A DNA stretch of 64,000 nucleotides, taken from the NCBI GenBank assembly GCA_010909165.1, contig VJWM01000025.1, forward strand, positions 1,674,001 through 1,738,000, in the 5' to 3' direction. A model generated the notes under the pieces. The model was given only the letters and a program-made list of their open reading frames with translations. It had not been told where the DNA came from and did not search any database. Made by a program: the position numbers and the translations under genes. This document shows, piece after piece, positions 3,195 to 42,361 of the stretch (position 1 is its first letter; each line of letters starts with the position of its first letter). This DNA comes from Anthoceros angustus. Taxonomy: Eukaryota > Plantae > Anthocerotophyta.

Positions 3195-6100
3195 TCAATG
3201 ACCGTCTCCGCAAGAACAAAAGCCGTTCACAAAATGGTGAACACGGTGAGCATCTCTCACTATGATCTCCCGTTTTTCGATCCGCGACAGGACTTTGGTA
3301 CCACTATGGCAGTCATTGCACATACGAAGATTTTTAGTGACTAACAAAGCTGTGCCTTGAGGGGTGTTCAAAAGCCCGTAAGCCAAAGCCAGCTTCTCAG
3401 CATGTCCACATAACGCGTCTTCCTTCTCTCTTTCAGAAACTTGTTTTAGCACCAATTGCGTGTGTGGCACATGGCCTCCATCGTCTTTCAACAGACAATT
3501 CAAGCTGCTTAGCTTGACCGAAATGTCGTCCCTGTCTTCTCCCACAACGAATGTGTGAACCTGGCTGTTCACCTCAATCCAGGCCCTTGCAGCCTTCTTG
3601 AATGCACCTGAACTCTTTCTCAGGTTCTCTACCCTCTCTACATCCCTCCACCTGCCTGCATCCGCATACAGATTTCCAAGTAGCACATATGCTGCTGCAT
3701 TTTCAGGTTCCAGTTTTATAAGATGATCAAAGCATCGTGCCCCACGCTCGGTATCTCCATGGCTTTTGCATGCATTCAGCAGGGCTCTCCACCCCACAAC
3801 GTCTTCCTCAAAGGGCATTGAGTACAACAACTTCTCTGCCTCATCAAGACGCCCTGCTCGCCCAAGAATGTCAACCATGCAAGCGTAGTGATGAACCCCA
3901 GGTGTTATCCCATGCTCCTGCACCATGCGTTCAAAATACTGCTGACCCTCATCTACCAGTCCAGCGTGACTGCATGCAACAAGAAGGGAAAGGAAAGCAG
4001 CACCATCAGGCTTGATGCCATGCTGCTCCATCTCGTGGAAACACTGGATCCCCATTCTGCCGTTGTTATGTTCAGCATAACCATTGAGTAGAGCCGTCCA
4101 TGCCACCACGTTTTTTGTAGGCAGGCGGTCAAATACCTTGCGGGCATCCTCAATAGTGGCACATTTGGCATACATGTCCACTAGGCTGCTGCCGACAAAC
4201 TCATTGGCTTCCAGTCCTCTTTCCTGTATCTGTAAATGAAGCTCCTTTCCTTGATGTAAAGCTCCAACACTAGCACATGCTTTCAGGAGGCACACAAAGG
4301 TCACAGCGTCAGACGGTCTCATACCCTCTATCTGCATGCGTGCATGAAGAGTCAGAGCTTCTTGACCAAGCCCTTGCTGAACATATCCTGTGATCATGGT
4401 ATTCCACGTCACCGAGTCTCTGGCAGGCAGTCTGTCGAACACTCTGCGAGCATCTTCTAAGCTACCACATTTTGCATACATGTCCACCACACTGCTACCA
4501 ACCACCAAATCAGCTTCTAGACCCCTTTCTTGTAGCTGAAGATGGAGCTCCCGGCCCTCCTGTAGATTGCCCAAGCCAGCACATGCATTCAGGAGGCAAA
4601 CAAACGTAAAACTATCAGCTAACGTAATGGCCTCCAATTGCATCCGTCTGTAAAGACTAAGAGCTTCTCTGCCGAGCCCTTGCTGTGCATACCCTGCAAT
4701 CACAGAATTCCATGTGACGCCATCTCTTGCCGGCATCCTTTCGAACACTCTACGAGCATCCTCTAAACTACCACATTTTGCATACATGTCCACCAGGCCA
4801 TTGCTCACAGCGATGTCGGCTTCCAGCCCATGTCTCTGGATCTGGAGATGAAGATCCTTGCCTGCATGTATGTCACCAATACCAGCACATGCTTTCAAGA
4901 GGCACATAAATGTAACCCGATTGGGAGTTATTCCTGGCGGCATTCGTGCAAACAGGGTAAGAGCCTCTTGACGAAGCCCATGTTGAACATACCCTGTGAT
5001 CATAGCATTCCATGCTACAACATCTTTGGCAGATATACTGTCAAATCACTGAGCATCCTCTAAACTACCACATTTTGCATACATGTCCACCAGGCCATTG
5101 CTCACAGCGATGTCGGCTTCCAGCCCATGTCTCTGGATCTGGAGATGAAGATCCTTGCCTGCATGTATGTCACCAATACCAGCACATGCTTTCAAGAGGC
5201 ACATAAATGTAACCCGATTGGGAGTTATTCCTGGCGGCATTCGTGCAAACAGGGTAAGAGCCTCTTGACGAAGCCCATGTTGAACATACCCTGTGATCAT
5301 AGCATTCCATGCTACAACATCTTTGGCAGATATACTGTCAAATACGCTGCGAGCATCCTCTATGCCACCACATTTTGCGTACATGTCCACCAGGGCAGTG
5401 CCTACTGCCAAGTCCAGTTCAAACCCTCTCTTTTTGACCTTCAGATGCAGCTCCTTACCATGCTGTAGAGCTCCCAAACTAGCACAGGCTCTAAGGAGGA
5501 TTACAAACGTAACATGATCAGCTAATTCGCTTGCCTCCTGCTCCCCATCGGCAAAAACATCGAGGGCTTCTTGCCCAAGCCCGTTCTGAGCATATCCTGC
5601 TAAAATAGCATTCCATGTCATCGCATCTCTTGTTGGCATTCTGTCAAACACTCTCCGTGCATCCTCTAAGCTCCCACATTTGGCATACATGTCTACCAGA
5701 CAGCTGCCAACAACTAGATCTGTCTCCAGGCCTTGTGCCTGGATCTGACGATGGAGTTCCTTCCCTTCGCGTAGGGCACCACTGCTGGCACATACTTTCA
5801 GAAGGCATGCAAAAGTGCCATTACTTGCCGGACTCAATCCTTCTTGTTGCATACTTGCAAAAAGAGAAAAGGCTTCTTGAGCAAGTCCCTCTTGAGCGCA
5901 CCCTGCAATCATGGAAGTCCATGTAGCTGCATCTCGTGCTGGCAGTCTTTCAAACATATGCCGAGCATCACTTAAGCTGCCGCACTTGGAATACATGTCC
6001 ACTAGGCTCCGGCCGACAACCACATCACCTTCTAGCCCTCTTTTACAAATCTCGAGATGAAGCTCCTTCCCCTTATGTAGATCTCCTATGCTGGCGCATG

Positions 6101-7154
6101 CCTTCAAGAGAGATGCAAATGTAAAATTGTTAGCTACAGCAAGGCCCTGCTGTTGCATGCTTGTATAGAGGCTCAAAGCTTCCTGACCAAGCCCACACTG
6201 GACATAGCCTCCAATCATAGCAGTCCACGTCACAATATCTTTGCTGTGCAACCTTTCAAACACCTTTCTTGCATCCTCAACGCTTCCACATTTTACATAC
6301 ATGTCAACCAAGCTGCTCCCAATCACAACATCAGCTTCAAGTCCTCGTTCCTGAATCTGAGTATGAAGTTCCTTTCCTTCAAGCAAGGCTCCAGTGCTCG
6401 CACAAGCTTTCAAGAGGCACGAAAATGTGACATGATTTGCTAACATCCTGCCCTCTTGTTGCATGCGGGCATACAAAGAAAGAGCTTCTCTACAACGCCC
6501 ATGTTCCACATAGCCCGCAATCATGGATGTCCATGTCACGACATTTTTGGCCTTCAAACTGTCAAACACTTGGATAGCATCCTCCAAGCTCCCACATTTT
6601 GCATACATGTCCACCAGAGAATTGCCTACAAACAAGTCAGGCTCGATCTTACTCCCTAGCACCTCAGCATGGACCTGCTTCCCAGATTCCAAGTCAGCTG
6701 TACTTGCACATGCCTTCAGGGCTGCAACAAATACATGATTGTTAGGCTTCACAGAAGACCGTCGCATCTGTTGATACAGTCGTATGGCATTCACTGGCTG
6801 TCCATGCTCAACATGTGCCGAAATAACGTAAAACCAGGAGAAGACGTTTGGTGTGGCCAGTTTGGCGAACACCTCCATGGCGTCCTGCAACCTGACATGG
6901 GAAGCATACATGCGGATGAAGTGGTTAGCCAAGAACGTCGTACACTCGTAGCCACTGTCGAGAGTGAGAGCATGAACACGTTTGCCAACAGTGAGATTCC
7001 TCTCCAGGATGCAGCCTTTGAGCAAACGGTAAAAAGCTGCGTCAGGTACATAAGATCCTTGCCCCACAAGAACATGTAAGGCCTCCACAGCCTCGTTGAG
7101 CTGCCCCTCTTCGCATAACTTGCTCCACGCCCCGACTTCTGACGGACTCGCCAT
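3195..7154 (-). CDS. PLS-class PPR protein with E1-E2-DYW:KP deaminase domain (candidate U-to-C organellar RNA editing factor); one in-frame TGA at 5046-5048
   Basis: ORFs 5046..7154 and 3195..5003 are in the same frame, joined by FDSISAKDVVAWNA. About 29 P/L/S motifs (32 counting the duplicated triplet), E1/E2, then FKKAARAWIEV, CGHAEKLALAYGLL, KNLRMCNDCH and C-terminal HHFVNGFCSCGDGH. Confidence 0.92.
4754..5343. repeat. Tandem duplication of one PLS triplet (293 bp x2, offset 297 bp)
   Basis: 4754-5046 and 5051-5343 appear identical, with a 4-nt junction (cact). Confidence 0.9.
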
Positions 7155-9044
7155 TCTGGACAGGCCAGGCGAGTGTCATCACACATTTCTGCACGTCCAG
7201 AAAGAGCTTGAGGCACAGCGGAAAGAAATCTACCTCCCAGACTGCTCATGTTGACTTGCTGGACAGAACACAGGAGGATTCGGAGCTAGGTCAACGCCGG
7301 CACTCTGTGCGGTTAGAAGCTTTCCCTGAACCCACGCGAGTTGGGAGTCAATCCACAATGCCCCCTTCCCAAATTCGTGCGCTGAGTCACGGCTAGCGGA
7401 ATCAAACTCCAATGCTGTGCATGGTTCCGCTGCAGCCCGCAAGGACGACATGTATCTCCACCATCTCTCCCCTGCTCTGCTTGGATGACTGGAGCTGTTT
7501 TGGACCAGACTTCCGACAACCAACTGGCCCCCAACTTTACCGCCTTTCCTCATCAGGTGCGCGTTGCAGTTTCACCGAAATGCCGCTAACCTAAACAATC
7601 CACAGGCAGAGTGCTGGGCATCTCGATCCATGCCGAATGTCTCTGCTGTATGTTGAATCTCATACTCCGAAGCGGATCTTCCAAACTGAGATTCAAGCCA
7701 GGTGCTGTGACCGAGCTCGACCAGACCTGGAAACGACATGGTTACCCAAGGTTTTGATTGGATCTGCGTGAGTCGCAAATCCTTCAACACCTTGCAAGAA
7801 TCCGGTGCCTCTTGCAATCATAGACCATCAAATTCGGATCCCCTGAGTAGGATATTTGCATCGGTTGAACGTTTCCAAGGAAACAGAGCTAGCTGTTCAA
7901 GGTTTCAATGAGAGATCAACACGGGATCTCTTCAACAGCACATCACACCGGATGTGTAAAGTCACGCTGAATACCATGACAGCTCCACGATCATTAGTCC
8001 AGAAACGGCCACGGAACTCAATTTGAGACTTTCACAGGAAGAGAGAATTTTTAAAGCGTTTCTAACAATGCATGGCATGGGGGCGTTTGTTTGCGCACCT
8101 ACACTTGTACGAGGAAAGCATTAAGTGGTGTCATTGGAAAGCCCCTGCGGCAAGGAGCAGTGGAGCACGGCACTACCTAAAGGAGAAAGGTTGGTTTCCC
8201 TTTCGATTCCTGCAGTATACAATGAAGGAAGCCGCGGCTGATGGGCTTGGACACTGAAAGCACCAGTTCCCGGAGTTCCGCTGTTTGAGCAAACTTTGTC
8301 TCAGGTTCCTCACACACTCTTCTCCCTCCACACAAAAAATCAGCATGATCAGAGCCCTCCTGAGACATCAAACTGATTTCCAAACACAAAAATTGATTGT
8401 CAAAACATGCCTAGGGCTGACTGAGCAACCCCCACACCCTCACAGTCCCGTCGGTCACGGGCCTGTTTGGGACGGCTACTCCCCTACCGGCTACATCCCG
8501 TGGGAAGACCGCCCGCTGCAGGTCTTCCTGGCAAAACACGTAGAATGGTACGGTCCCGGCAGTGGTCGGCACCGGTGCAACGGGCTAGGAGAGGGCGGAA
8601 CCGGGAGATAAGCCGGCTGCCCTCCTTCACATTCGTCCATACCATTTTACCGCAATCTATGTAGTTATCCTATTTCAGTCCCATGATGAAAATCTAATCT
8701 TTAGTGGACTTAAATAAAATTTTTCTTTTTATCTTCCTCCTCAACGGTTTCCATTTCGGAGAGCAGGCACCTCGAGTTCTATGAACTCACTGTCCCGACC
8801 TCTGGTTTAGAGGCATCGGATGTCGAGGCACTGAATTGAATTTTGTTTTTCCATCTCAACAATTATAGGTGTTGATCATGCTTTGAGCATAGATCGCTCA
8901 AGAGTTGGGACTATTTAAAAAAAAGATAAAATCCTCCCTTTCACCAGTGACATCCCTTCATTAGAACTCTATAATCAAACGTCCTTGGGGATGGATCAAT
9001 CCTTGGATGGGGTGTAATCCATTCCCAGCTTGATATGAATGCCC

Positions 9045-9345
9045 TAGTCTCCGCAGTGTGTGGGCCCTTAAAATTACAAACTCTAGTTGTTAGTATCCTA
9101 GGGAGTTACTCTAGGCTAAAACTTCCGGTGTGGAATTTTAATGACTACTTTGAAACCCTATGAATATATAAAACCCTATGAATTCTCAAAAAAAAAAAGA
9201 TAAAAAATATACACAAGTAAAATAAACAACCCCACCAATTCCAAATGAGGCTATTCGTCCTTACAGGCCCCTTACGATTACAAACTCCACTTGTTAGTGT
9301 TATACAAGGTTAATCCAGTCTAAAACTTCCGGTGTGGGACTTCGA
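9045..9345. repeat. Degenerate copies of the GTTAGT...GGTTACTC...AAACT dispersed repeat family
   Basis: ctctagttgttagtatcctagggagttactctaggctaaaacttccggtgtgg and a second copy near 9290-9340 resemble units at 46485-46890 and 49115-49565. Confidence 0.6.
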
Positions 9346-10691
9346 TGCATACTTCAGAATATCTAAATAAAAGTCTCCAAATTCTCCAAAAAAAGATAAA
9401 AAGTACATAGATAAATGTAGCCTTGCCAATTCAAAATGAGGGACTCGTCCTTTTGGGGTTAGCACATTGAACAAATCGTTTTTAACGGTAGAGAGTGTTT
9501 GTTTCCAACGCACGTATTGATGGCAACAGGTGTGATTGTTATTGAAAATTTAATACAAAATTAAATTTTTAAAAAATTGAGCTTTATCATTTCTATGACT
9601 AGGGTTGCTTAGCAAAAGTTAACACCTCTATCTTTGCTCAGAGACCATCTTGGTTTGGTTTGCTGAGAACTTTGGATTATAAATCTATCATATTTATTTA
9701 TCTAGCTTATACAAGGTCGAGGAGGCCAAAGACACATACCATAACCAACGGTCAAAGAAGAAGAAGAATTCTATTTAAGTCCACTAAGGACGGATTTCCG
9801 TCATGTGACTTGGTACTTAACAACTTGTACCATGGTGTGCCTAAGCTACTTGCACCAAGGGCATCCACTCCCTTCAGGCACCCTATCTAAGTACCGATCT
9901 AAGCTCAGGATGCTTAATCGTGCCGTTCTTATAAAGGTGTGTGCATTTGGCCTAAGCCATTTGGTCCATAGGAAAATACTATCAACACATGTAATGTCCA
10001 TAGAATGACTAGTCATACAGCCAATGGCAGTGACTCCAAGAGTCCTTGTCATCTTCACCTCCTTCTGGGATAAACTACCCATGAAAAAGCAACTTGGTAT
10101 ATCTTCATGTTGTACTCTATATACTATACAAGTATGTACTATATAGGGAAGCTCTTTATGGACTCTACATGTTGCATTGAATTCAAGATAGATAACAATG
10201 AATATTCCTGTATCAGTACATCGAGGCTGACGAAAATGATATTCCGGTTTTAATCACCAATCTCTCTCTCCGCCATCCGTGACACACTGGGGGATCTCAA
10301 AGATCGTCCTCGATCCTCCCTCCAGCTTTTTCTTACAAACTGAATACGGACGCCGCATTAAGCAGTGGGGCCCACGGGCCACCATCTGGGAGCTCGCCCA
10401 AGACCGGCGCCCTCCGGTTCCGGTGCCGCCAGGCCGAGCGACATGGGCATGAAGCTATGGCATGTGCTTGTTGACGACACCGGGAACCGGACAGCGCCCG
10501 TCTTTATTTATTATTACAATATATGTACAGAGGCTTCCAGCTGGGGCCTATCCCACAGGCCGGAAAGGCTGGCACTGGGAGAGTGGCGGCGGGGAGGGAG
10601 GACTAGTGGAGTTGATGCATTCCACGGGCAGACTATTTCAATTGCATGTACATGGCGTTCCAGGCGCATTTGCCACCGCCTGCTCGTGCAA

Positions 10692-12182
10692 ATGGCGGGG
10701 CTGGACCTTGCGTTCCTGGTGGACGCTACACGGAGCATGAAACGTGCCTTTCCTCTGGTGAAGAATTGTGTTGTTTCTACGCTGGATCACATCATCAGCC
10801 ATTGTCCTCAGTGCAAGCTCCGTGTGGCGTTCGTTTCGTACCTGGATTACGACGACCCCCGTTGCGAGGAATGTGACTTCACCCCCGACCTGGTCTCCTT
10901 CAACCTTTTTCTGTCGAAAGTGAGGGCACTGAGTGAAGGTGGTGAGGATACGGCGGAAGATGTGTTCAGCGGCCTCGAGCGTGTGGCAAATTTGAGCTGG
11001 GAGGCTCCGAACCGTGTTTTGATTCACATTGCTGACGCTCCTTGCCATGGTACACAGTTTCACGACGGCGTCGAAGACAGGTACCCGCGCGGGGACGCCA
11101 AGGGGCGGGACATTGGCGTTCTGCTTCGGAGCTTGCGGCAAGGTTGCGAAATCTCCACCTATTACTTTTTTCATCTCAACGACACGACGAAGAAGATGGT
11201 GCGGGAGTTTGAGGAAGTGGTGCCAGGGGGAGGCTGGATTCAGGAGCACATGTTTGAAGACATTGGAGTTGTGGCACAAGTTGTCGCGGAGTTGTGCATT
11301 AGTACAGTGGTGCGTAGTGCTTTCAGCGTGCTTCAAGTTGGCCAACCCGAAGTGAGGCCTGGGACTCCTAAGTGGAGCAAAATCCCTCCTCGTAAGGCAT
11401 ATCGATTCAGGAATAAGCGCCGAGAGACCTTGGATGGCCTTTTGCGGGATCTGGCTGCCGGCAGGAGGTGGAAGGTGTCAAAAATGGAGGAGCCGATTGA
11501 GGTGAGGATAGCACGACACCCCTTCAGCGGTGATGGAAGTGGTCGGTGGCCTTTTTTTGCTCTGGTGACGTCAGAGACAAAAGGAGATCGTGTGATGGTG
11601 GTGAAGAGGTTCAAGAAGCAGTACGAGGATGATCCCCGGAAGGAGCAGGCCAAGTATGAGGAGCAGATGGAAGTGCAATCAGTGGCTGCACACATGGCCC
11701 GTAAATTCAACCGCTTGCTGAGGAATTATGAAGGGGCAAAACGAGTGAAATTCTACACGGTGACAACGCTTAAAGTGCGCTCCCATCGAGGTGCATCCGA
11801 GGAGCCTCGATTCTACAACATGGAGAAATATCTCGAAGGATCATGGATAAGGTATTCGAACAATGCTGGATATGTGAACACTAAAGATTACGCTGCTACC
11901 TTGCAGGCCTTCAGTCACTGGACGCATGAGAGGTCCCAAGGTTACCTGATGGTGACTGACCTGCAGGGTGTGCGAAACCCCGATTCTCGCAACAACGAGT
12001 TTTTACTCTGTGATCCAGCAATTCACACCGAGGATTGCAAACGCTTCAGCGATACGAACTTGGGACGATTAGGGTTTCAGCGGTTTTACCAAACCCACAC
12101 TTGCAACAATGTTTGCCGAGCTCTAAAGCTGGAGGTAGGCATTAATGGCTATAGTTCGACAGGTACAGTGCTGAGGTACTGA
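10692..12182 (+). CDS. Intronless vWA domain + alpha-kinase (eEF2K/MHCK family; VwkA-like architecture), about 496 aa
   Basis: vWA: LDLAFLVDATRSM (MIDAS-like DxTxS), LRVAFVSYLDYD, GGEDTAEDVFSGL, VLIHIADAPCHG. Alpha-kinase: VVKRFK, YNMEKYLEG, YSNNAG, QAFSHWTH, MVTDLQGV, LCDPAIH, NLGRLG, HTCNNVC. Start at the ATG at 10692 is inferred. Confidence 0.9.
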   Translation: MAGLDLAFLVDATRSMKRAFPLVKNCVVSTLDHIISHCPQCKLRVAFVSYLDYDDPRCEECDFTPDLVSFNLFLSKVRALSEGGEDTAEDVFSGLERVANLSWEAPNRVLIHIADAPCHGTQFHDGVEDRYPRGDAKGRDIGVLLRSLRQGCEISTYYFFHLNDTTKKMVREFEEVVPGGGWIQEHMFEDIGVVAQVVAELCISTVVRSAFSVLQVGQPEVRPGTPKWSKIPPRKAYRFRNKRRETLDGLLRDLAAGRRWKVSKMEEPIEVRIARHPFSGDGSGRWPFFALVTSETKGDRVMVVKRFKKQYEDDPRKEQAKYEEQMEVQSVAAHMARKFNRLLRNYEGAKRVKFYTVTTLKVRSHRGASEEPRFYNMEKYLEGSWIRYSNNAGYVNTKDYAATLQAFSHWTHERSQGYLMVTDLQGVRNPDSRNNEFLLCDPAIHTEDCKRFSDTNLGRLGFQRFYQTHTCNNVCRALKLEVGINGYSSTGTVLRY

Positions 12183-13121
12183 TGTCCCTGAGGGGCTTGT
12201 ACGGTTGTGGAGTTACGGTTCTAAGAAGGCTGCCGCCGTTATGTAAATCCCAAAATTTCCAAGCTGCTGTCCGCCGATTTTGGCGGACAACTGTGAGACA
12301 ACATTACCAAACGGTTGCGTATGGACATGGAAGTGCCCTTCCCGACGTATCTCTAACGGAGCGTTCACCGACCTGTTTAGACATCCATTTGGTATCATTT
12401 TGGTGTTTGTCTAGGTTGCTGCTCTTGTCGTTTTGGTGTTTCGTTCAGCTTGTTGCTCGCGCGCTTTCGGCGTACGTGCGCCTCCAGCCCTCCTTGCGCT
12501 CGCTCATCCGTGTCTGTTTGCGAGTTGTTTTGTCATGGCTCCCAAGTCTGATGAGGAAAAGGCGGGCAAGGGCATGGGCGTCTTTGGTTGCGAAGCTCTT
12601 CTATTCGTTTTATCGAGACCAGATTTGCCCCTCGAAGTGTCTAAGATCCTCCTTTCTTGCCACAAGTTTCCGGTAAATGCCACCCAGTGCCATTTCGATG
12701 GAACCTGAGAATCCCGCAAGAAAGTGAGCACCAGCGTATCCGGCAAGAAGGTGGATTAGAAGAGTAGAAATCAGGCTGACCACTTATTTTCCCTTCATTA
12801 TCAACATTCGAGTCGAGCAACCGCTTCAGACCAATGCCTGCATTGCTTCCATCCACAGCGTCCTGTCATCATTTTGGAAGAAGCAAGAGCATGAGTTGCA
12901 GAACATGTTATGAAGTTGCTGAGTTTCGAAATCGGAGTTGGAACCCAGACACACAAGTTGCACAGTATGCTAAGTAGATGTAGAATATGAAATGCATCAG
13001 ACAAACACACACACACCCGGATTGAAGTCCTCAAAACAGTTGGTCTCTCATGAGGGCGCAAAGCCGGTGGACTGGGTTGAATTTTTAGCTGACGCTGTTC
13101 GTGGAACCCAGCAGTGCTGCC

Positions 13122-16100
13122 TCATAGTTGCACATTACCGTAAGCTATCTTTTGCTTCACGAGCATTCTCCGTTCCATTTGAGGGTCGTAGGAGGGCCTG
13201 CTCTGCTTGTACAAGCCGCGTCTTGGGCAACAAGTGATGCCTTTACTATCCAGAATCTGCAGCCAGTCAGCTTTTGACAAGGTGGGGAAACACCTGAGGG
13301 GTGGTGTATTCTGCATTTCGTCCAGAAGGTTTCTCTGCAGCCTCCGCACAGCTTTTGCCCTAGCAAACTGATGTCTGGAGAAAGCCCCCGTCAGCTCTGA
13401 ATCATACTTGTGGTCAGACCTCCACGGCTTTCTCGTTGCAAGCCTCTTTTTCTTCCTTCTCCTGCGGTTTGTGCTCTCCATTCCTAGTAGCAACTCCCTA
13501 TACCTTGCAGAGGGTTTTAACAACGACGTTGTTCCCGGGGCTCCTGAGAAGGCATTCTCATCGGTGTCCGTGGCCAGAACTTGCTCCAGATCTGGCTGCT
13601 TCTCGTTTTGTGTGTCATCAATAAGTGATTCCAGCTCCAGAATTGCTTCTTTCATAAGACTAAAGCAGTCCTGCTTTCTGTCCACCCGACTGGCCGAGTG
13701 TACCAATTCCAATCCATGTGAATCTAGTTTTGCCTCTAATCTCCGAGTCCTTTGACTGTTGCAGATGTCCCTCAAATCCACAGGAGGGCCACCTGCATCC
13801 GGCTCCTTGAGAGCAGCTTGGGGCCTCCCGTTCCTTGCTGGTTTTTGGACTCTGAAAAGATTGGGCAAATATAAGATACAATGGCGTACCTGGCAACTAA
13901 CGTGACTTCCCGAGTTGAACCCTTCCAATACCTCTGCAGGGAGACCTTGGGCAGATCCGAGCTCCCCTCAACTGCATCATCTGGCAGAGATATGGACACT
14001 GGGTAGCCAGCATCCATACGGTTATATGCTGGTAGCTGCCGCGGCTGTTGCCCTGCCTTCGTCGTTGGAATCTGTATCCTTGAGCTCACAATGTCTCGAC
14101 TAAATTGATGCGCAGTGTCATGGAGGATTGGTGGAGAGACCTCACAGTCACTCGCGACATCAGTGTGTTCTGACGACACTGAAGCATTCCTCAAACCAGA
14201 GATCCTCGAGGAACTGATTGGCACATCCTCTTCAATACTTTGCTTGTTGGCTACGAACTCTCGAGATCGCGTAGAGGTCTCCGAGATGTCCCCAGAATAG
14301 TCGAGACTAGTGTCTGACGGCTGTGAAGGAGGCGACTGAGCAGTAGTCAGAAGAGCTTCAGCAGAGTTACCTGTCTGCTCGACGCTGGGCTCCATCTCAT
14401 CCACCACTGCTTCCCCCGAAGAGGAGGGTATTTTTCCAAGGCCACTGCACTGTGGTGCATGAGATCCTCCCAAGGACTCATCTGGGTCAATCTCCCTCTT
14501 GTCATGAGAAGCACCGCGGTGATGGTCATTTACCCCTGCATCAACGGAAGCAATATCAACAGAGATGATACACGAGTTGATGTTTCCTTCAACATGTCTT
14601 GATTTGCGTCTTGCAGAGCCTCCCCCCATGCATGGATACAGTTGTTTGGTGGGTTGGCGACAACTATCTTCCCTTCTTCATTACCAGGCAACTGCTTAAT
14701 GCGTAAGACTCTGGTACTTGCCTCTCCAGACTGGACTGCTGTTGAAGGAGGTTCCGCACTTATGATCCCATCTGCCTGATTTGTAACATCTATTCCACCA
14801 AGCTCCAGCAATTTACCTTTAAGAATACCCAGCAGCTCCTCTGCCGCAGCATGAGGAGTGGTAGGAGTCTCAGTGTCAGGGGAATGTTCTTCTGGAGTTG
14901 GAGATCGAAGTGGCTCTTCTAGTAACCTCAACAGAACCTCCTCAGGTGCATCTTCATTGGCTTCAATCTCATGTTGAGCTTCCAAGGCATTTCTTGATTC
15001 TACCGACAGATCGTTCACCAATATCCTTTCAAGTTGTGCTGTTCCGTCTTCTTGAGGAACTAAGTACCTAAGGTGCAGCTGGTCAGGGCTCTCGTCAGTG
15101 CTCGAAATAAGAGGAGCCATACCATATGATGTTTCTCCATGAAATGAGTTCACCTCATCAGCTCCCATGGCCAAGTAATCTACATTCATTTCAGGCTCTT
15201 TAGACGCCAGTTGTACCATTTGATGATGAACTATGGCTGATGTTGGCGACGAGGGCACAATGGCTGATGATGTCGGCGATGAGGGCACATCATCCTCGGT
15301 CTCTAACACACCTCCATTCAATTCACTTCCCCTAGGGCTGGCATGATCTGAGTAAGCTGCCCCTTTCGGTGTTTCTGTGGTTGATGACAACGACACAGCA
15401 GCCTCAGTCTCCAAAACTCCTCCATCCAGTTCCCTTCCCCAACTGCTGTTCCTATGCATGTAGACCTCTTCTTCTGGTAAACTTGTGATTGACAGTCGGT
15501 GACCTGGAGTTTGGGCAGCTGGAGTTTGTTGCCCAAAGCTGCTTTCAGAGGACACCTGTCTAATGGGTGAGATATTGCCAATCTGTGACTCCAAAACAAC
15601 TTCATCCAGTTCCCTTCCCCAACTGCTGGTCCTATTCATGTATGCCTCTTCCTCTGGTACACTTGTGATTGACAGTCGGTGACCTGGAGTTTGTGCGGCT
15701 GGAGTTTGTTGCCCAGAGCTGCTTTCAGAGTACACCTGTCTAGTACGTGAGATGTTGCCAGTCTGTGGCACTCGACGTTCCCACGCTGCGTCTGACGCGT
15801 CAGAAAGCTCCCGACTATTCACAGCATCCAGGGTGTAATCTACACTTGACACTCCTTCCAAATGTCCCGACTTCGAGACTGTCAGCAACCATGTTTTAGG
15901 CTCGTCTTCCTTTCCAGCAACTCTTTCCTCTCCAGACTCCTGTACTTTATGCTGCCTACTTATTTCATCAGTTGATTTTCCTCCCTTCACATAGACTGAT
16001 GGTGTGGGATCTGCTAAGCGTACTGCCTCCTGAAGAGCTCTACTTCTTCCCAAGTCCTTGCTTAAGGTAGCTTGATTCCTGCCAAGCTCTTCAGGGACAT

Positions 16101-18189
16101 TAGGCTCATATGGTCCTTGAGGACCCCACGTTCCCCAAAGACTCGTTTGGGTGGAAGAATCTTTGTGTGCCGTGTCAAATTCCCTTTCATCCCCAGAACC
16201 CGTTGGACCTCCTGATGGCTGTGGAGGCCCCTTATGGTCACCATCCTGCGTCTCTGGACATTCACAATACTTCCAGGTTTTAACTATCCGCTTCCCACAA
16301 TCTTGGCAAACGTACTGGTGTTGCAAGGAGCCTAGTTTCGGCTTCCCACAAATGTTGCACAGTAGCTGCAATTGTCTATCAGCATATTGGGCAGGATCAG
16401 AACCAGATTCGTCACGGGCACCAGAGGGGCACACACAATGTGATTCCTCATCGCTCTCAGTGGCTATCTCTCCAAGGTTTGGACTGGTTTCCATTGAAGG
16501 CGGAGCAGTATCAGGTTGAACTACACCTCCTACTACAGGTGAATCCCTTCCAGCTACAAGGCCACCTTCTTCATAAGACACCCTCATTGGTAAACTGCTG
16601 GAAGATGACTCCATGCTGTGTTGGTCATAGAAAGAGTCTGCTTGCCCGCCTATCTCTGTAGCTGCTTGCGATAAGCCTTCACTGGCTCCCTGATCCCAAT
16701 GATGGGGCACAAACAAAGGATTGACAATTGTAACATGTTGTGATTCATCTTCCGCTGTTAGTAGGACCTCGGAGGTTTCGTCTTCTTTAATGGGAGCATT
16801 TGAGCTTCTCCCACACTTGTAGCACAGTTTCCTGAGGTAGTAACCAATTCCCTTGGTCTCATCGGTTTGAGTCAACTCAAATAACGCACTCTCTGAAAGC
16901 GAAGGGCTTGTCAAGTCCTGTTGCCCTTCTGCCATGACTAAATCATGGTGAGACAAATCGCCATGTTCTTCAACCATCATGGGGGACACGTCCGAGTTTG
17001 CATGTCCTTCCTCCTCTGATCCAACGTAGGGTATTGTTCCTGAGCTGATAGTCTGTGAGTCGGGTCCCCAGATTGCATATCCTACCTCCTCTGATCCAAA
17101 GTAGGGTATTGCTCCTGAGCGAATAGTCTGTGCGTCGTGTCCCCAGTCTGCATGTCCTACCTCCTCTGATGCAACGTAGGGCGTTGTTCCTGCCCTACTT
17201 GGCCGTGACTCACCACGGTCAGCATCCTTGGCATCTGCCAAGGCAATGCCTAGCTCAGGCGGATCACCCTGCCCTAGTTCTCCAGATGAATTGCCAATGT
17301 AATAAGGAACTGCTCCAGCTGAAGTGCTATCGTAGTAGGAAACTCCTCCAGCAAAATCAGCAAAGATCTGAGGCTCCTCCGTGATGAGTATATCAGTAGA
17401 AGTTTGCCCATCAGGCAGTACTCGGGAATGCCCGCTCTGCTCCACTGAAGACCGTGGTGGATAAATTCCTGCTAACAGACTAGAAAAAGCCAGACCGAGA
17501 ATGCCAGAATCAGAAACCACACCAGACCTTTGAGTTGTAGTTTGATGTTGTTCATCAAGATCAGCTTCCGTCTGTGAAGCCTTGTCGTTAACTGTTGGCT
17601 GCAGCAACCCCACTTCAGGCTCCGACACTTTAGCCTTCTTCCGTAAGTTCACTCCACAGGCTGCGTCATATGAATGCCTCCTTTTCATCATCTCAAAGGA
17701 TCTCATCAGAGAGAGTTCAAGGCTTGCAATACGAGCTGCCTGGCTAGCAGATGCTAACGGTTGAGATTCGATGTCATTGCTGAGAGTCTGAGGTTCCACC
17801 CTTCCATCCACTATCTGAAAAGCAGCTAGAGACCCGGCTGTAGGATGTGATGACGGGGACCACATGTCGAATCTGGACGCTGTGGACGACGATACAGAGG
17901 ATGCAGTCCTATGGCTACATTCGGCAGTACTATCAAGGGTACTGGTATATTTGGTCCTCGTAGAAGATCGCCGAAAAGGAATCTCAGCGTTTTCCACCAG
18001 AGGGTGAGCTGTTGAGATCTGCACTTGAACACCAGGATTGCCGGTGGCCTGGTAAATGAGGTTCTCCACGTGATAAAGCGAGTCCAGGGTCTTGCACAAT
18101 TCTCCTTTCAAAGCTTGATTAGCAGGGTTCTCTTCAAGCATCTTCTTGAGCAGTCGCAGAGCCTCCAAGTGCTCATTCTTTCGCTTCAT
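13122..18189 (-). CDS. Large low-complexity protein of unknown function, probably multi-exon; Ser/Glu-rich, CxxC-CxxC motif, internal repeats
   Basis: 1279-codon ORF 14530..18369 (first plausible ATG 18189). Coding-like ORFs continue at 13772..14629 and 13122..13928. Exon boundaries and 3' end uncertain. Confidence 0.65.
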
Positions 18190-19144
18190 CAGAGAGTCCT
18201 GGTGAACAAGCAGTTGCAGCTGGGAACACAATTTATCACTACAAAAGGAACCCACTGCGGAGACCAACCTGGTTGGGCATCGCAGTAAAATGCCGAGTGA
18301 ACTCTCTTGCCATTTGTCTTCTGTTGGCCAGAACCTGCTGATGTTTCTGATACCACATATACAAAACAAGAACAGCTCCCCCTAGCAGCGCCAGAACCAG
18401 CGGAAAGGCTACGGAATACGAAATGAAAGGCTTCTTCGTGGCTTCTGCGGAATGACCATGACACCTTGCCTCACTTCTCCCATGCTACCAATTCCAAAAA
18501 AAAGGTCCAAAACTTCCAAACTAACCTGATAAAAATCTCGCATGGCGACCGACGACCTCTGCACTGTGGCCTAGGACATGAGGTCGTGTCACATTCTGCA
18601 GCTGATGCTGTGCAAAACCCTGATCGGACATCCTTCACACATTGGCATGGAAATTTTACCCTGCCTTTGCCCCACTGTTTACCAAACTCTCCTTCAATGT
18701 CACAGGATCCTTTGCAAGCTCAGTTGCGCATTCACTCTACAGACGCAGAGTGGAATTCATTCCACTCTGCGGTGGTAGCATGAACAAACAAATGAACGAA
18801 CTCACAATCTGCAGAGGAAAAAACCATAGTACCAAGATTCCCGCTGCCACAACAACAGGACAAGGTGCCGATGAGAAACATGCAAGCCAGGGCCCGTGCG
18901 ACCGAAACCAGGGATCCCCATCTCTGCCTTCACAATCCAGCCATGGCCTCACGAACTAGGCTTTGGGAAGAAAGAAATATGAACGAACCTTTCCACGTTT
19001 CGTACCAGACCGATTCTATCCAACCCTACCGATTCTGGCGATACCTACCGATTCTAGCAAACCCTAACAGGAGCTCATATTTAGCTTCAGCCTCTTGTTG
19101 AACACAACCTTTCTCGACGGGCGTGGTTTCAGTCGGCGGCCGCT

Positions 19145-38366: not shown

Positions 38367-39721
38367 TGCTTGAAGGCACCACAAGCTGTTTGAAAGTTGA
38401 GAGTATAAATAATTCTTGGATTATAAAGAATACAATAGCGTCTTATACAAGAATGTAAAATCTATAAAATTTAAAATAAAATATTTAATGAAGACCTTGC
38501 AAGCTCCTGAAAATAAATAAATAAATAAATATAAGCTCCTTGAAAGGATGGACCCTTAAGGTGTACTTGAACTTATCTTTATTGTTTCACTGGGAAATAC
38601 TTGAAGGGTGAAGATGTGTCTCGCACATTTATAGGTACAGAACTAGGACATCTAATCACAGAAACTACCTAGGTAATAATACCTAGATAAATATTATGGT
38701 AGGTATTAGTACCTATTCAATAATTTCTAATATAAAAACTCAAACAGGAAAAATAGTACATTGCATTTACGTAAATTACAATGGTTACCCCGTTTCCCGG
38801 TGCGTCCCGTTTGGTGTACTGTGCTCGGTTTTAGGGTTATAGATGGTGCATCCCGGTGAGGTTCCCGAACCAAGATCATCAGCGTTCTGATCTGATCAGT
38901 CTTCCAGGCAAGCTAGCTCTTTTTTGGTGTCGTCCAATCAATGACGCCTTGCCAACATGTCAACCAAGCAGTTGCAAACAAATTTGTGAGCCTCGACCCA
39001 CTAGGACATCACACATGCACCTGCTGCCCAGTTCTCACTTCTCCCGTTGCAAAATCTTACAGGGCAGGTCCAAACACATGCCCATCCAGATTCACACTTA
39101 CGACCGCATGAAGACATTTATATGTATTGTGGTACACCAGATGAGAAGCATGTATTCGACGGATGTGGTTGCACATTGCACACGAAGAGACAGAGATCTA
39201 AAGGTACAATTGTCTGTCTGCACCAGGATTCCGAAGTCATGATGAACAGCTTCATTGACATGGCCCTTTACTCACAATTTCAGCCATGATCACCTCGCTG
39301 GAAGATCCTTGTCAAGCCGAGCTTAGGCTCACCAAGGTGCTGCGTCTGGCAGGTTCCTTGTTTGCCCATGGTGGGTCCCTGAAGTCGGGTACGCTGGAGG
39401 TCGTCCTGAAACTCCCGTGAACCTCCTCACAGCCCTCGCCGGAGGAGAGCCCTGAACCTATGGATGCAAGAGGCATGCAAAAAGGTCGCACTTGGAGCAT
39501 CTGATGTGACTGACAGTAGCATGACCTGATGGCGTTAGTGTGTTCAGCAAGATGAGTAGTTTCCATGTGCCGGTGTGTATGCCGCTCCGACATTTGGTGT
39601 TGAGATTGTGGAAGCATGGATGCTTTACTCCTCTTCAGCTGGGTGTTGGGTTCAGCAGATTCCCTTGCCGGTGATGGTTGCATGGAGCATTGCACTTCAC
39701 TCACACAGAGGGGGACAGTGT

Positions 39722-42361
39722 ATGTTGTGCCAACAGCTGTTCTGGAACCCACAGAGGCTAATTAGTGGCATCACGGGTGTTGCAGGACGAGGTTACGATG
39801 TCCTCACTTTGACGAGTCAAGAGCTAGGAGTCCAACCCGGTCTTCTGGCTAAGCAAGTTGTACAAGCCGGCTTTTTCAGGCCTGCAGGATCCGGAAGGGG
39901 CGTAACTGCTGAAATTGCGAGCAGACTGTGTCGGCAGAGGCAGGTGTCAGAAGCTGTTGAGGCTCTGGGAGTTTTGGTGCAAACAGACTGTAGTATTTCA
40001 CAGTCTCTAGTCTATGACATCCTCAGAAGCTTTGGGGTTAAGAAGGACCTGGTTCTGGGTCGCCGGGTCCATGCCCTGGCAGTGGAGAAGGGGTTTGAGT
40101 CGGACACGTTCCTGTGCAATCATATCCTGCGAATGTACGCGTCTCATGGCCTGTTGCAAGAAGCGATGGATGTGTTCACCGTTGTTGCTCAACCAGATGC
40201 CTTCATGTGGTCTTCCATTATTTCTGCGCATGTTAAACAGGGACAGGCTAAGCAGGCCATAGAGCTCTATCACCAGATGTGCAGAACATCAAGTGTGAAG
40301 CCGGATAGGTATGTGTATGTAGCAGCACTACAGGCTTGTGCAAGGGGTCAAGACTTGAAAGCCGGGCACCAGGTACATGCTCATGTTTTGGCCAGTGGGG
40401 TTGAGACTGATGCATTTCTTTCGAATTGCTTGGTTGACATGTATGCAAAGTGTGGCAGCTTGGGTGATGCCAAAAGATTGTTTGAAGGGCTTCCATCCAA
40501 AGACGTGGTCACGTGGACCGCTCTGATAGCAGGGTATTCCCAGCAGGGCAGGGGTCAGGAAGCTCTTCGTCTTTATGGTGCTATGCGAGAAGAAGGTATT
40601 GTTTCACCTGATTCCGTGACATTTGTGTGCCTCCTGCAGGCGTGTGCAAGTGTTGGTGCCCAAGCTTTGGAGATAGGCAAGCAGCTTCATGCACAGATCA
40701 GCGAACGAGGACTTCAGCTGGATTTGGTTGTGGCCAACAGTTTGGTAGATATGTATGCAAAATGTGGCAGCCTTGAGGGTGCTCAGGGTGTGTTTGATGG
40801 ACTTGGTCACAAAGACGTGATTACGTGGAATGCCATGTTAGCAGGATATTCCCAGCAGGGCCTGGGTGAAGAAGCTCTTCACTTATATGCTGCCATGCAA
40901 GATGAAGGCATGGCAACCCCAGATTCTGTTACGTTTGTTTGCCTCCTTCAGGCATGCGCTAGTGTGGGTCCCCCGGCTTTGCTGACAGGGAAGGAGCTTC
41001 ATGCACAGATTGAGCGTGGAGGGCTTCAGTGTGATGTGGTCATGGGTTGCAGCCTGGTAAACATGTATGCAAAATGCGGCAGTCTACAGGATGCTCAAAG
41101 CGTGTTTGATGGACTTGGCCAAAAGGATGTGGTTACGTGGACAGCGCTTATAGCAGGATATTCTCAGTGCGGCATGGGTCAGGAAGCCCTTCAGCTGTAT
41201 AGTGCTATGCGAAACGAAGGCATTGTAGCACCTGATTCTGTGACTATTGTGTGCCTACTTCAGGCATGTGCAAGTGTCGGTAACACAGGCTTTGAGACAG
41301 GGAAGGAGCTTCATGCACAGATTGGAGAGTGGGGACTTCAGTGTGATCGGGTTGTAGGTTGCAGCTTGGTAAATATGTATGCGAAATGTGGCAGTCTGGA
41401 GGATGCCCAGGCCGTATTTGATGGACTTGATCAGAAGGATGTGGTTACGTGGAACGCCATGATAGCAGGGCATTCTCAGCAGGGCATGGGTCAGGAAGCC
41501 CTTCATGTCTACCGTGCAATGCAAGACGAGGGCATTGCTGCACCTGATTCTGTGACATTTCTGTGCCTCCTGCAGGCATGTGCAAACGTGGCAGCTTTGC
41601 GTATGGGAAGGCATCTTCATGTTCAGATTGAAGAACAAGGGCTTCAAGCTGATGTGTCGGTCGGCATCAGTTTGATAAACATGTATGCAAAGTCTGGGAG
41701 CATGCCGGAGGCACAGCAGGTGTTTGATGCCCTTCTTGAAAAGGACATTGTTGCTTGGAATGCTCTGATTGCAGGATACACCCGTCAAGGAGACAGTGAC
41801 ATGGTCTTCGGCCTGGTTCACAGAATGGGAGAGGCTGGCATCCAGCCAGACAGCATCACATTCCTCAGTGTGCTAACAGCCTGCAGTCATTCAGGTCTAG
41901 TGGACACAGGGCAAGACCTCTTTGAGGCCATGAGCAGGCAGTATGGCATCCCTCCGAACGGAGAGCACTATGCATGCATGGTGGATCTTCTGGGTCGTGC
42001 AGGCCAACTTGACGAGGCGGTAGCAGTTGTGAGGGACATGCCTGTACTTCCCAACGCTGCAGTTTGGCACACTTTGTTGGGTGCGTGTCAAAAATGGGGC
42101 AACGTGGAGGTGGGATGCCATGCTTTCGAAGAAGCCGTCAAGCTCGACGAGAAAGATGCCGCAGCATACGTGTTGATGTCGAACATATATAATAGCATTC
42201 AGATGTGGGAACAGGCACAGAGGACTCACCGGAGGAGGTTAGAAATTGGAGCATGGAAGGAGCCAGGCCGGAGCTGGTGGACAGACATGAGTGGACTAGT
42301 GCATAGTTTTGTAGGTTGCGATATAAGCATGTCGAAAGTGAAGGCATTTATCCAAGGTTGA
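39722..42361 (+). CDS. PLS-class PPR protein, E1-E2 plus truncated E+ with WW-type PG box, no deaminase domain
   Basis: L-S + 5 PLS triplets + P2L2S2 + E1E2, then AWKEPGRSWWTDMSGLVHSFVG. No HxE or CxxC downstream. ATG 39722 is inferred within ORF 39575..42361. Confidence 0.92.
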   Translation: MLCQQLFWNPQRLISGITGVAGRGYDVLTLTSQELGVQPGLLAKQVVQAGFFRPAGSGRGVTAEIASRLCRQRQVSEAVEALGVLVQTDCSISQSLVYDILRSFGVKKDLVLGRRVHALAVEKGFESDTFLCNHILRMYASHGLLQEAMDVFTVVAQPDAFMWSSIISAHVKQGQAKQAIELYHQMCRTSSVKPDRYVYVAALQACARGQDLKAGHQVHAHVLASGVETDAFLSNCLVDMYAKCGSLGDAKRLFEGLPSKDVVTWTALIAGYSQQGRGQEALRLYGAMREEGIVSPDSVTFVCLLQACASVGAQALEIGKQLHAQISERGLQLDLVVANSLVDMYAKCGSLEGAQGVFDGLGHKDVITWNAMLAGYSQQGLGEEALHLYAAMQDEGMATPDSVTFVCLLQACASVGPPALLTGKELHAQIERGGLQCDVVMGCSLVNMYAKCGSLQDAQSVFDGLGQKDVVTWTALIAGYSQCGMGQEALQLYSAMRNEGIVAPDSVTIVCLLQACASVGNTGFETGKELHAQIGEWGLQCDRVVGCSLVNMYAKCGSLEDAQAVFDGLDQKDVVTWNAMIAGHSQQGMGQEALHVYRAMQDEGIAAPDSVTFLCLLQACANVAALRMGRHLHVQIEEQGLQADVSVGISLINMYAKSGSMPEAQQVFDALLEKDIVAWNALIAGYTRQGDSDMVFGLVHRMGEAGIQPDSITFLSVLTACSHSGLVDTGQDLFEAMSRQYGIPPNGEHYACMVDLLGRAGQLDEAVAVVRDMPVLPNAAVWHTLLGACQKWGNVEVGCHAFEEAVKLDEKDAAAYVLMSNIYNSIQMWEQAQRTHRRRLEIGAWKEPGRSWWTDMSGLVHSFVGCDISMSKVKAFIQG

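Follow-up and report, generated by a model that had tools for sequence, protein, structure and literature searches.

A stretch of 64,000 nucleotides of the Anthoceros angustus genome (Anthocerotophyta; assembly GCA_010909165.1, contig VJWM01000025.1, positions 1,674,001 to 1,738,000 of the forward strand; the whole stretch is called the window below, and all coordinates refer to it) carries an intact, intronless gene for a protein in which a vWA domain precedes an alpha-kinase domain. The gene is likely a transcribed and apparently functional land-plant member of the VwkA type (KinBase 'Alpha/VWL'), within a vWA-alpha-kinase family that was inherited vertically in the green lineage. Most descriptions of alpha-kinases come from animals and amoebae, and 'higher plants' are said to lack them. 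That the family exists, and that a non-seed plant has it, is already known; what is new is this member, its intronless truncated form and its transcription. The features of the gene, including the metal-ion-dependent adhesion site (MIDAS) of the vWA domain, are as follows.

10692–12182, forward strand: coding sequence of the vWA-alpha-kinase, 496 amino acids plus stop; ATG context gcaaATGg.
10654–12196, forward strand: transcribed region, unspliced, from an RNA contig, the ends of which are not proven transcript ends.
10692–11336, forward strand: vWA domain, amino acids 1–215, with an integrin beta-I-like fold (VWA_4, family profile, Foldseek).
10722–10736, forward strand: MIDAS loop D11-A-T13-R-S15, with D11, T13 and S15 identical in all 45 sequences.
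11025–11063, forward strand: H112-I-A-D115-A-P-C118-H119-G...H124, the MIDAS Asp115 with nearly invariant His/Cys columns.
11337–11531, forward strand: linker and N-terminal extension of the kinase lobe, amino acids 216–280 (from model confidence by block).
11532–12116, forward strand: alpha-kinase catalytic domain, amino acids 281–475 (PF02816, structure matches).
11604–11606, forward strand: K305, the ATP-binding lysine (in VVKRFK), equivalent to MHCK-A K645 (alignment; invariant in 45 sequences).
11916–12116, forward strand: zinc module H409 (11916), H469 (12096), C471 (12102) and C475 (12114); ligands invariant in 45 sequences.
11958–11966, forward strand: D423-L-Q425, the catalytic Asp and Gln (in TDLQG), equivalent to MHCK-A D756 and Q758 (alignment; invariant).
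12012–12014, forward strand: D441, the metal-binding, phosphorylatable Asp (in CDPAIH), equivalent to MHCK-A D766 (alignment; invariant).
12057–12074, forward strand: N456-L-G-R-L-G461, the glycine-rich N/D loop (family alignment).

The coding sequence lies in a long open reading frame (ORF; 10365–12182, forward strand), the sole one in the region, and its ATG at 10692 is the first within the part that has homologues. Two public runs from one sample contain the stretch: X1, of DNA, and X2, the type of which was initially guessed as RNA. X2 does have the properties of an RNA run: in one of its contigs a 78-nt GT..AG intron in the leader of a nearby PPR gene is spliced out, and the cover of the run is absent from the intergenic segments 8401–9600, 10001–10600 and 12201–13000. 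A 1,543-nt contig of X2 lies on 10654–12196 with no mismatches, no gaps and no joint. The gene is, therefore, transcribed, and without introns. The ATG at 10692 is also the first one within this contig, and the transcript word-depth of the kinase gene in X2 is about that of the neighbouring PPR gene. The evidence for transcription comes from this one RNA data set. The possibility that the gene extends further upstream, by another exon or a longer N-terminus, was rejected: the in-frame stretch of 109 codons at 10365–10691 has no similarity to the extensions of the relatives, and the RNA contig begins only at 10654. An earlier note on this DNA, made from the sequence without database searches, had described an intact intronless gene at 10692–12182, and the 496 open codons together with the exact, unspliced RNA contig confirm that description. 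A scan of 9000–13000 against Rfam found no structured RNA; a scan for bacterial promoters and terminators, irrelevant here, was empty.

A Pfam scan of the whole protein returned the vWA and Alpha_kinase domains only. Alpha_kinase (PF02816) matched with E=8.3e-48 and 163.4 bits (cut-off 21.3), over profile positions 2–185 of 185, and 21 amino acids remain after the kinase domain. Sequence search of the PDB gave matches to EhAK1 (4kuj, 6.5e-25) and MHCK-A (3lkm, 4e-20), and also to eEF2K, ALPK1 and TRPM7/ChaK. The active-site equivalences given above were read from the HMMER alignment to MHCK-A (3lkm), and each residue was verified in the translation. In the same comparison the zinc ligands H409, H469, C471 and C475 align with H742, H794, C796 and C800 of MHCK-A. 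By the titles of the PDB entries, D756A and D766A of MHCK-A are inactive mutants, and a phosphorylated aspartate is described. Across an alignment of 45 family members, 31 residues are invariant; the window protein keeps 31 of these 31, all catalytic residues and zinc ligands included, and the nearly invariant residues are likewise kept. The motifs that had been picked out from the letters (DATRS, VVKRFK, TDLQG, CDPAIH, NLGxxG and the His/His/Cys/Cys ligands) are all present where they had been placed.

The N-terminal domain matched VWA_4 (PF25106) with 29.4 bits when amino acids 1–215 were used alone and with 26.6 bits in the whole protein, the cut-off being 27; the same profile is matched by 43 out of 43 family members. 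A profile made from the N-terminal domains of the 43 members found integrin beta-8, beta-1 and beta-6 and the collagen VI vWA domain in the PDB, with E of ~1e-6 to 1e-5. The MIDAS residues D11, T13, S15, D86, E89, D90 and D115 are invariant across 43–45 members and make up the full set. Throughout the family, Dictyostelium relatives included, the MIDAS has the form DxTxS, not the canonical DxSxS. In all vWA-alpha-kinases a nearly invariant motif, H-x2-D-A-P-C-H-G-x4-H, adjoins the MIDAS Asp. The conservation of these columns suggests that the cluster H112/C118/H119/H124 may be an extra, second metal site.

An AlphaFold2 model built from the 45-sequence alignment is confident for both domains (mean predicted local distance difference test score, pLDDT, 90.5; predicted template modelling score, pTM, 0.72; no segment below 50), and its only low-confidence stretch is around amino acids 211–220. 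With Foldseek, the C-terminal half matched 4kuj, 3lkm and 1ia9 with template modelling (TM) scores of 0.79, 0.78 and 0.67, respectively, and eEF2K and ChaK were matched as well. The N-terminal half matched integrin beta chains (the I-like vWA domain) with E of ~1e-10.

We searched for relatives of the window protein with a word-indexed protein search. The best matches were from Physcomitrium (49% identity, 99% coverage), Ceratodon, Sphagnum, Adiantum, Riccia and Calypogeia, followed by the chlorophytes Haematococcus, Edaphochlamys, Dunaliella, Chlamydomonas eustigma, Ostreobium and Gonium; further matches were from bdelloid rotifers, nematodes, Dictyostelium, Balamuthia, a brown alga and a fungus. 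Land-plant relatives are 39–51% identical over 89–99% of the query, and non-plants 29–37%. Among the latter are the VwkA-like proteins of Dictyostelium, P0072 (30% over 97%, E=2e-53) and P0085 (29% over 97%, E=1e-49). An exhaustive search of representative sequences returned 351 clusters at E<=1e-30, which points to a large family, the top one being an Adiantum representative with 46% identity. Looking up the clusters of unnamed relatives added no taxa other than Sphagnum, Calypogeia and Rotaria.

The tree alignment held 68 rows, with the remaining unnamed matches of the word-indexed search left out, and two trees were made: one under LG+C20 (quick search) with the Shimodaira–Hasegawa-like approximate likelihood ratio test (SH-aLRT), and an independent one under LG+F+G4 with ultrafast bootstrap (UFBoot). 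Under LG+C20, a single clade (SH-aLRT 98) contains all land-plant sequences, the window sequence included, and Haematococcus and Edaphochlamys join it (96). Under LG+F+G4, the split between land plants and all else has an SH-aLRT of 98.6 and a UFBoot of 100. Chlorophyceae are the nearest outgroup of the land-plant clade; the trees do not resolve the order within that clade.

These trees bear directly on the first of two origins that had been proposed for the gene, horizontal acquisition. On such a reading the gene would have come from a non-plant donor (for example, an amoebozoan, fungus, rotifer or alga) and its lack of introns would be a mark of foreign origin, to which one could add the lack of the N-terminal extension found in plant relatives, a long terminal branch and a G+C content at third codon positions (GC3) of 0.59, compared to 0.43–0.49 in the adjacent ORFs. 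However, the window sequence is on the land-plant side of the split in both trees (98.6/100 and 98), and its top identities are to mosses, ferns and liverworts (42–51%, versus 29–37% to non-plants). Moreover, the introns of the plant family stand at positions common with a chlorophyte (see below), which makes the family an old one with vertical descent among green plants and algae, and any transfer then could only have been from plant to plant. We, thus, consider a foreign origin extremely unlikely; the gene sits inside the land-plant clade, and its introns were lost secondarily. Composition was also tried as a signal of transfer and was set aside as uninformative, GC and GC3 being only mildly above the neighbours and codon-frequency correlations being confounded by amino-acid composition.

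Some relatives have features of their own. In Riccia sorocarpa and Adiantum capillus-veneris the gene is present in several copies (P0016–P0019, P0008/P0056 and P0010/P0015), and their adjacent locus tags suggest tandem duplications. In Riccia P0018, ubiquitin-like domains (PF00240, PF11976) are fused N-terminally. Full-length vWA-alpha-kinases are found in bdelloid rotifers, nematodes and a flatworm (P0034, P0035, P0044, P0049, P0050, P0055, P0076, P0090, P0097, P0107 and P0119); both trees place the rotifer group apart from the group of nematodes and flatworm.

For the history of the introns, exact exon matches of four orthologues were mapped to their genomic loci, and the positions were transferred to the window protein via the alignment. 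Four intron positions are common to Physcomitrium, Sphagnum and Riccia: amino acid 17 (phase 0, just after DATGSM), ~242, ~300 and ~342. The chlorophyte Edaphochlamys has 11 introns, one of which shares the amino-acid-17 position in the same phase, while another falls within one codon of ~342. The Adiantum gene takes 2,680 nt for 631 amino acids and, therefore, has introns too. Since intron positions are common to bryophytes and a chlorophyte, the ancestral green gene had introns, and the window copy lost them all. The window protein also lacks the N-terminal extension of 100–350 amino acids that is present in every other plant orthologue. As judged from gene structure, the simplest account of the intron loss would be an origin from processed mRNA, as a retrogene or by cDNA-mediated conversion. 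Such an origin would also explain the intronlessness that had prompted the idea of horizontal transfer. A tblastn search found no second copy within the 64-kb window.

A copy of this kind could be transcribed and yet be decaying, or it could have ceased to signal as a kinase and be a pseudokinase or scaffold. The retrogene-like structure, the long branch of the window sequence, the loss of the coiled-coil-like N-terminal extension that all other plant orthologues have, and the single RNA data set would all fit with this. We nevertheless regard it as improbable: 496 codons are open, the 31 family-invariant residues with the catalytic and zinc ligands among them are intact, the AlphaFold2 model is confident for both domains, and in transcript word-depth the gene resembles the PPR gene beside it.

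The surroundings of the gene show which genome it belongs to. PPR genes lie on both sides of it.

3195–5003, reverse strand: PPR-E-DYW deaminase gene (DYW_deaminase, E=6e-37).
5046–7154, reverse strand: PPR gene, the upstream neighbour (PPR Pfam matches).
7156–7233, reverse strand: 78-nt GT..AG intron in the 5′ leader of the PPR gene at 5046–7154 (joint 7155/7234 in an X2 RNA contig).
39575–42361, forward strand: PPR-E gene (Pfam).

PPR/DYW genes are a hallmark of organelle RNA editing in land plants, and as they stand on both sides of the kinase gene, the flanking DNA is plant DNA. Contigs of the DNA run X1 cover 9890–10739 and from 10715 to beyond 13000. The continuity of reads that the earlier note had wished to see was, thus, found in part: X1 contigs run from 9890 through the kinase gene past 13000, but a repeat at 9183–9755 is bridged by no short DNA contig, so no single contig joins the kinase gene to the upstream PPR gene. 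This gap is what speaks for a contaminant or an assembly chimera in place of a plant gene, a possibility that we consider negligible. The kinase gene is inside a 64-kb window with PPR-DYW genes on either side, the same-sample RNA is exact, a related organism (run X3) has stretches that are at least 90% identical within the gene, and the phylogeny puts the window sequence among land plants.

Two other elements were noted near the gene. The segment 8698–9790 has 33-nt terminal inverted repeats, 88% complementary and 1,027 nt apart, and its right end (9755–9965) occurs at extreme copy number in DNA and RNA contigs of the organism and its relative (word depth 2e4–2e5). It looks like an element of the terminal inverted repeat or miniature inverted-repeat transposable element (TIR/MITE) type and lies 0.9 kb before the kinase ATG. 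On the downstream side, next to the kinase gene, is an unexplained large gene with a 1,279-amino-acid ORF (14530–18369, reverse strand), followed by two more ORFs on the same strand (13122–14629, reverse strand); the 1,279-amino-acid ORF matched no Pfam family and had no usable look-alike in ESM-Atlas.

In the protein database, no seed plant was present among 120 full-length matches (all E<1e-43) or among 21 matches to the kinase domain alone. The same database includes the proteomes of Cryptomeria, Ginkgo, Pinus, Taxus, angiosperms, Diphasiastrum and Ceratopteris, as shown by a search with the PPR-DYW neighbour, the matches of which were 40–61% identical. We infer a loss of the family in the seed-plant line and, within the reach of the searches, in some other vascular plants as well. 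The second of the two proposed origins, retention of an ancestral module that is absent from seed plants, is, thus, the one that agrees with the data: a land-plant clade beside chlorophytes, shared introns and no seed-plant match.

Several observations weigh against the reading of a functional, vertically inherited gene that passed through an mRNA copy. There is no poly(A) remnant after the stop codon and no flanking target-site duplication, though such marks may have decayed. The search for a parental, intron-bearing copy reached no further than the window, and the missing introns are the only ground for proposing retroposition. The terminal branch of the window sequence is long (0.6–0.76 substitutions per site), which could reflect relaxed constraint or a changed function. 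No streptophyte alga was identified among the relatives, and the statement 'ancestral in Viridiplantae' is based on chlorophytes and land plants. The absence from seed plants is one from protein databases, not from genome-level searches. Finally, the X1 contigs have many single-nucleotide gaps or deletions relative to the window inside the ORF (10697–11226); these are probably noise of X1, as the RNA contig of this sample agrees exactly with the window.

Part of this has precedents in the literature. Alpha kinases were noted in Physcomitrella in 2010 (PMC3019232), the only paper that searches with alpha-kinase and bryophyte terms found, and a 2011 paper counts 'Alpha/VWL' among the ancient kinase classes of eukaryotes (PMC3218828). 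The first of these states that the moss alpha kinases are without a VWA domain (PMC3019232), and the second gives Alpha/VWL as absent from metazoans (PMC3218828). Both statements are to be corrected. Physcomitrium patens P0001 aligns across the entire vWA domain, including a DATGS MIDAS loop, and matches PF25106; by its sequence, the moss alpha-kinase protein does carry a vWA domain. By the same kind of evidence, VWL-type proteins exist in some metazoans, namely rotifers, nematodes and a flatworm. In public databases, the proteins from moss, liverwort and fern already bear the name 'Alpha-type protein kinase domain-containing protein', and no functional study of any plant member came up in full-text literature searches. 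The novelty of an uncharacterised plant kinase was, therefore, overstated in the earlier note, as orthologues are widespread in non-seed plants and annotated, moss alpha kinases had been noted in 2010, and the class was listed in 2011; that the plant proteins are functionally uncharacterised agrees with our literature searches.

The window gene and its moss, liverwort and fern orthologues show that non-seed land plants have kept the VwkA-type class and express it, so that its lack in seed plants is a loss. Since no paper was found on what any plant member does, the class is worth taking up by reverse genetics, in Physcomitrium or Anthoceros. In other respects the gene is ordinary, being a vertically inherited member of a known family that is already annotated in public databases, and not a foreign or new system. 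The transcript of the Physcomitrium orthologue is present in 113 blocks of assembled public runs, which suggests broad expression in the moss.

What the protein does can be considered from what is established for vWA domains and alpha-kinases, from which the following mechanism is derived. Through a divalent cation, the MIDAS face of the vWA domain probably captures an acidic side chain on a partner or substrate protein, and the tethered alpha-kinase would then phosphorylate Ser/Thr on the docked partner, or on itself. Mg-ATP would be held by K305 and D441 and catalysis carried out by D423, in a kinase domain with a zinc-stabilized C-lobe. The window copy lost all ancestral introns, most simply through reverse transcription of an mRNA, and has since probably been kept by selection.

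The characterized member of the class is VwkA of Dictyostelium, which autophosphorylates, alters the level and assembly of myosin II, and is located on the contractile vacuole and Golgi (PMC2827801); its action on its pathway is indirect. It is listed as the one verified calmodulin-regulated kinase of that organism (PMC7072818). That plants are without myosin II is established and also described in PMC4083560, and the plant substrate, therefore, cannot be the myosin II heavy chain. That the window gene encodes a plant eEF2 kinase or myosin heavy-chain kinase is highly unlikely, even though its kinase domain matches the structures of eEF2K and MHCK-A (E of ~1e-20 in sequence and 1e-17 in fold). 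The protein has neither the calmodulin-binding N-terminus and SEL1-repeat C-terminus of eEF2K nor the WD40 and coiled-coil parts of the MHCKs, Pfam finding vWA and Alpha_kinase only. The regulation of eEF2 or myosin proposed by the earlier note, thus, has no support, and neither does its suggestion of an immune role, which was pure speculation.

With the vertically inherited, functional kinase as the starting point, a broader hypothesis can be put forward, although we think it doubtful as a whole. Non-seed plants might keep a metal-dependent, and possibly Ca2+/calmodulin-dependent, vWA-alpha-kinase pathway that seed plants have lost, with a plant-specific substrate, for example, in membrane traffic, osmoregulation or the cytoskeleton. 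In this lineage a truncated retrocopy that is missing the N-terminal coiled-coil region might have taken the place of the gene, with its regulation rewired as a result, and the His/Cys cluster might be a second, regulatory metal site peculiar to the class.

The window protein can be compared with several known systems. Its N-terminal domain is matched best, in structure and by profile, by the integrin beta I-like (vWA) domain, which has the same topology of a metal-dependent adhesion site. In contrast to the integrin domain, however, that of the window protein is cytosolic, lacks both signal peptide and transmembrane part, is fused to a kinase, and has the additional conserved His/Cys cluster by the MIDAS Asp. 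For the catalytic domain, EhAK1 (4kuj) and MHCK-A (3lkm) have the same fold and active site (TM 0.78–0.79), whereas their accessory domains differ from those of the window protein, being SH3 in EhAK1 and a coiled coil with WD40 in MHCK-A; their targets, by the titles of the entries, are actin and myosin II, respectively.

The closest counterparts in plants are the land-plant 'Alpha-type protein kinase domain-containing proteins' of Physcomitrium patens (P0001), Ceratodon, Sphagnum, Riccia, Calypogeia and Adiantum, which are orthologous or co-orthologous to the window protein, fall in the same clade and have the same two domains. Their genes have 4–5 introns at conserved positions and encode N-terminal extensions of 100–350 amino acids, whereas the window gene has neither and is on a longer branch. 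Outside plants, VwkA of Dictyostelium discoideum (KinBase PKL/Alpha/VWL) has the same collinear order of a vWA domain with a MIDAS, a linker and an alpha-kinase. VwkA-like proteins share with the window protein the DxTxS form of the MIDAS and the catalytic and zinc residues, at 29–30% identity over 97%. In contrast to VwkA, the window protein has no N-terminal extension, and deep branches separate the two in the trees. The settings differ as well: myosin II, the pathway of which VwkA perturbs, is absent in plants, and the vegetative cells of land plants have no contractile vacuole.

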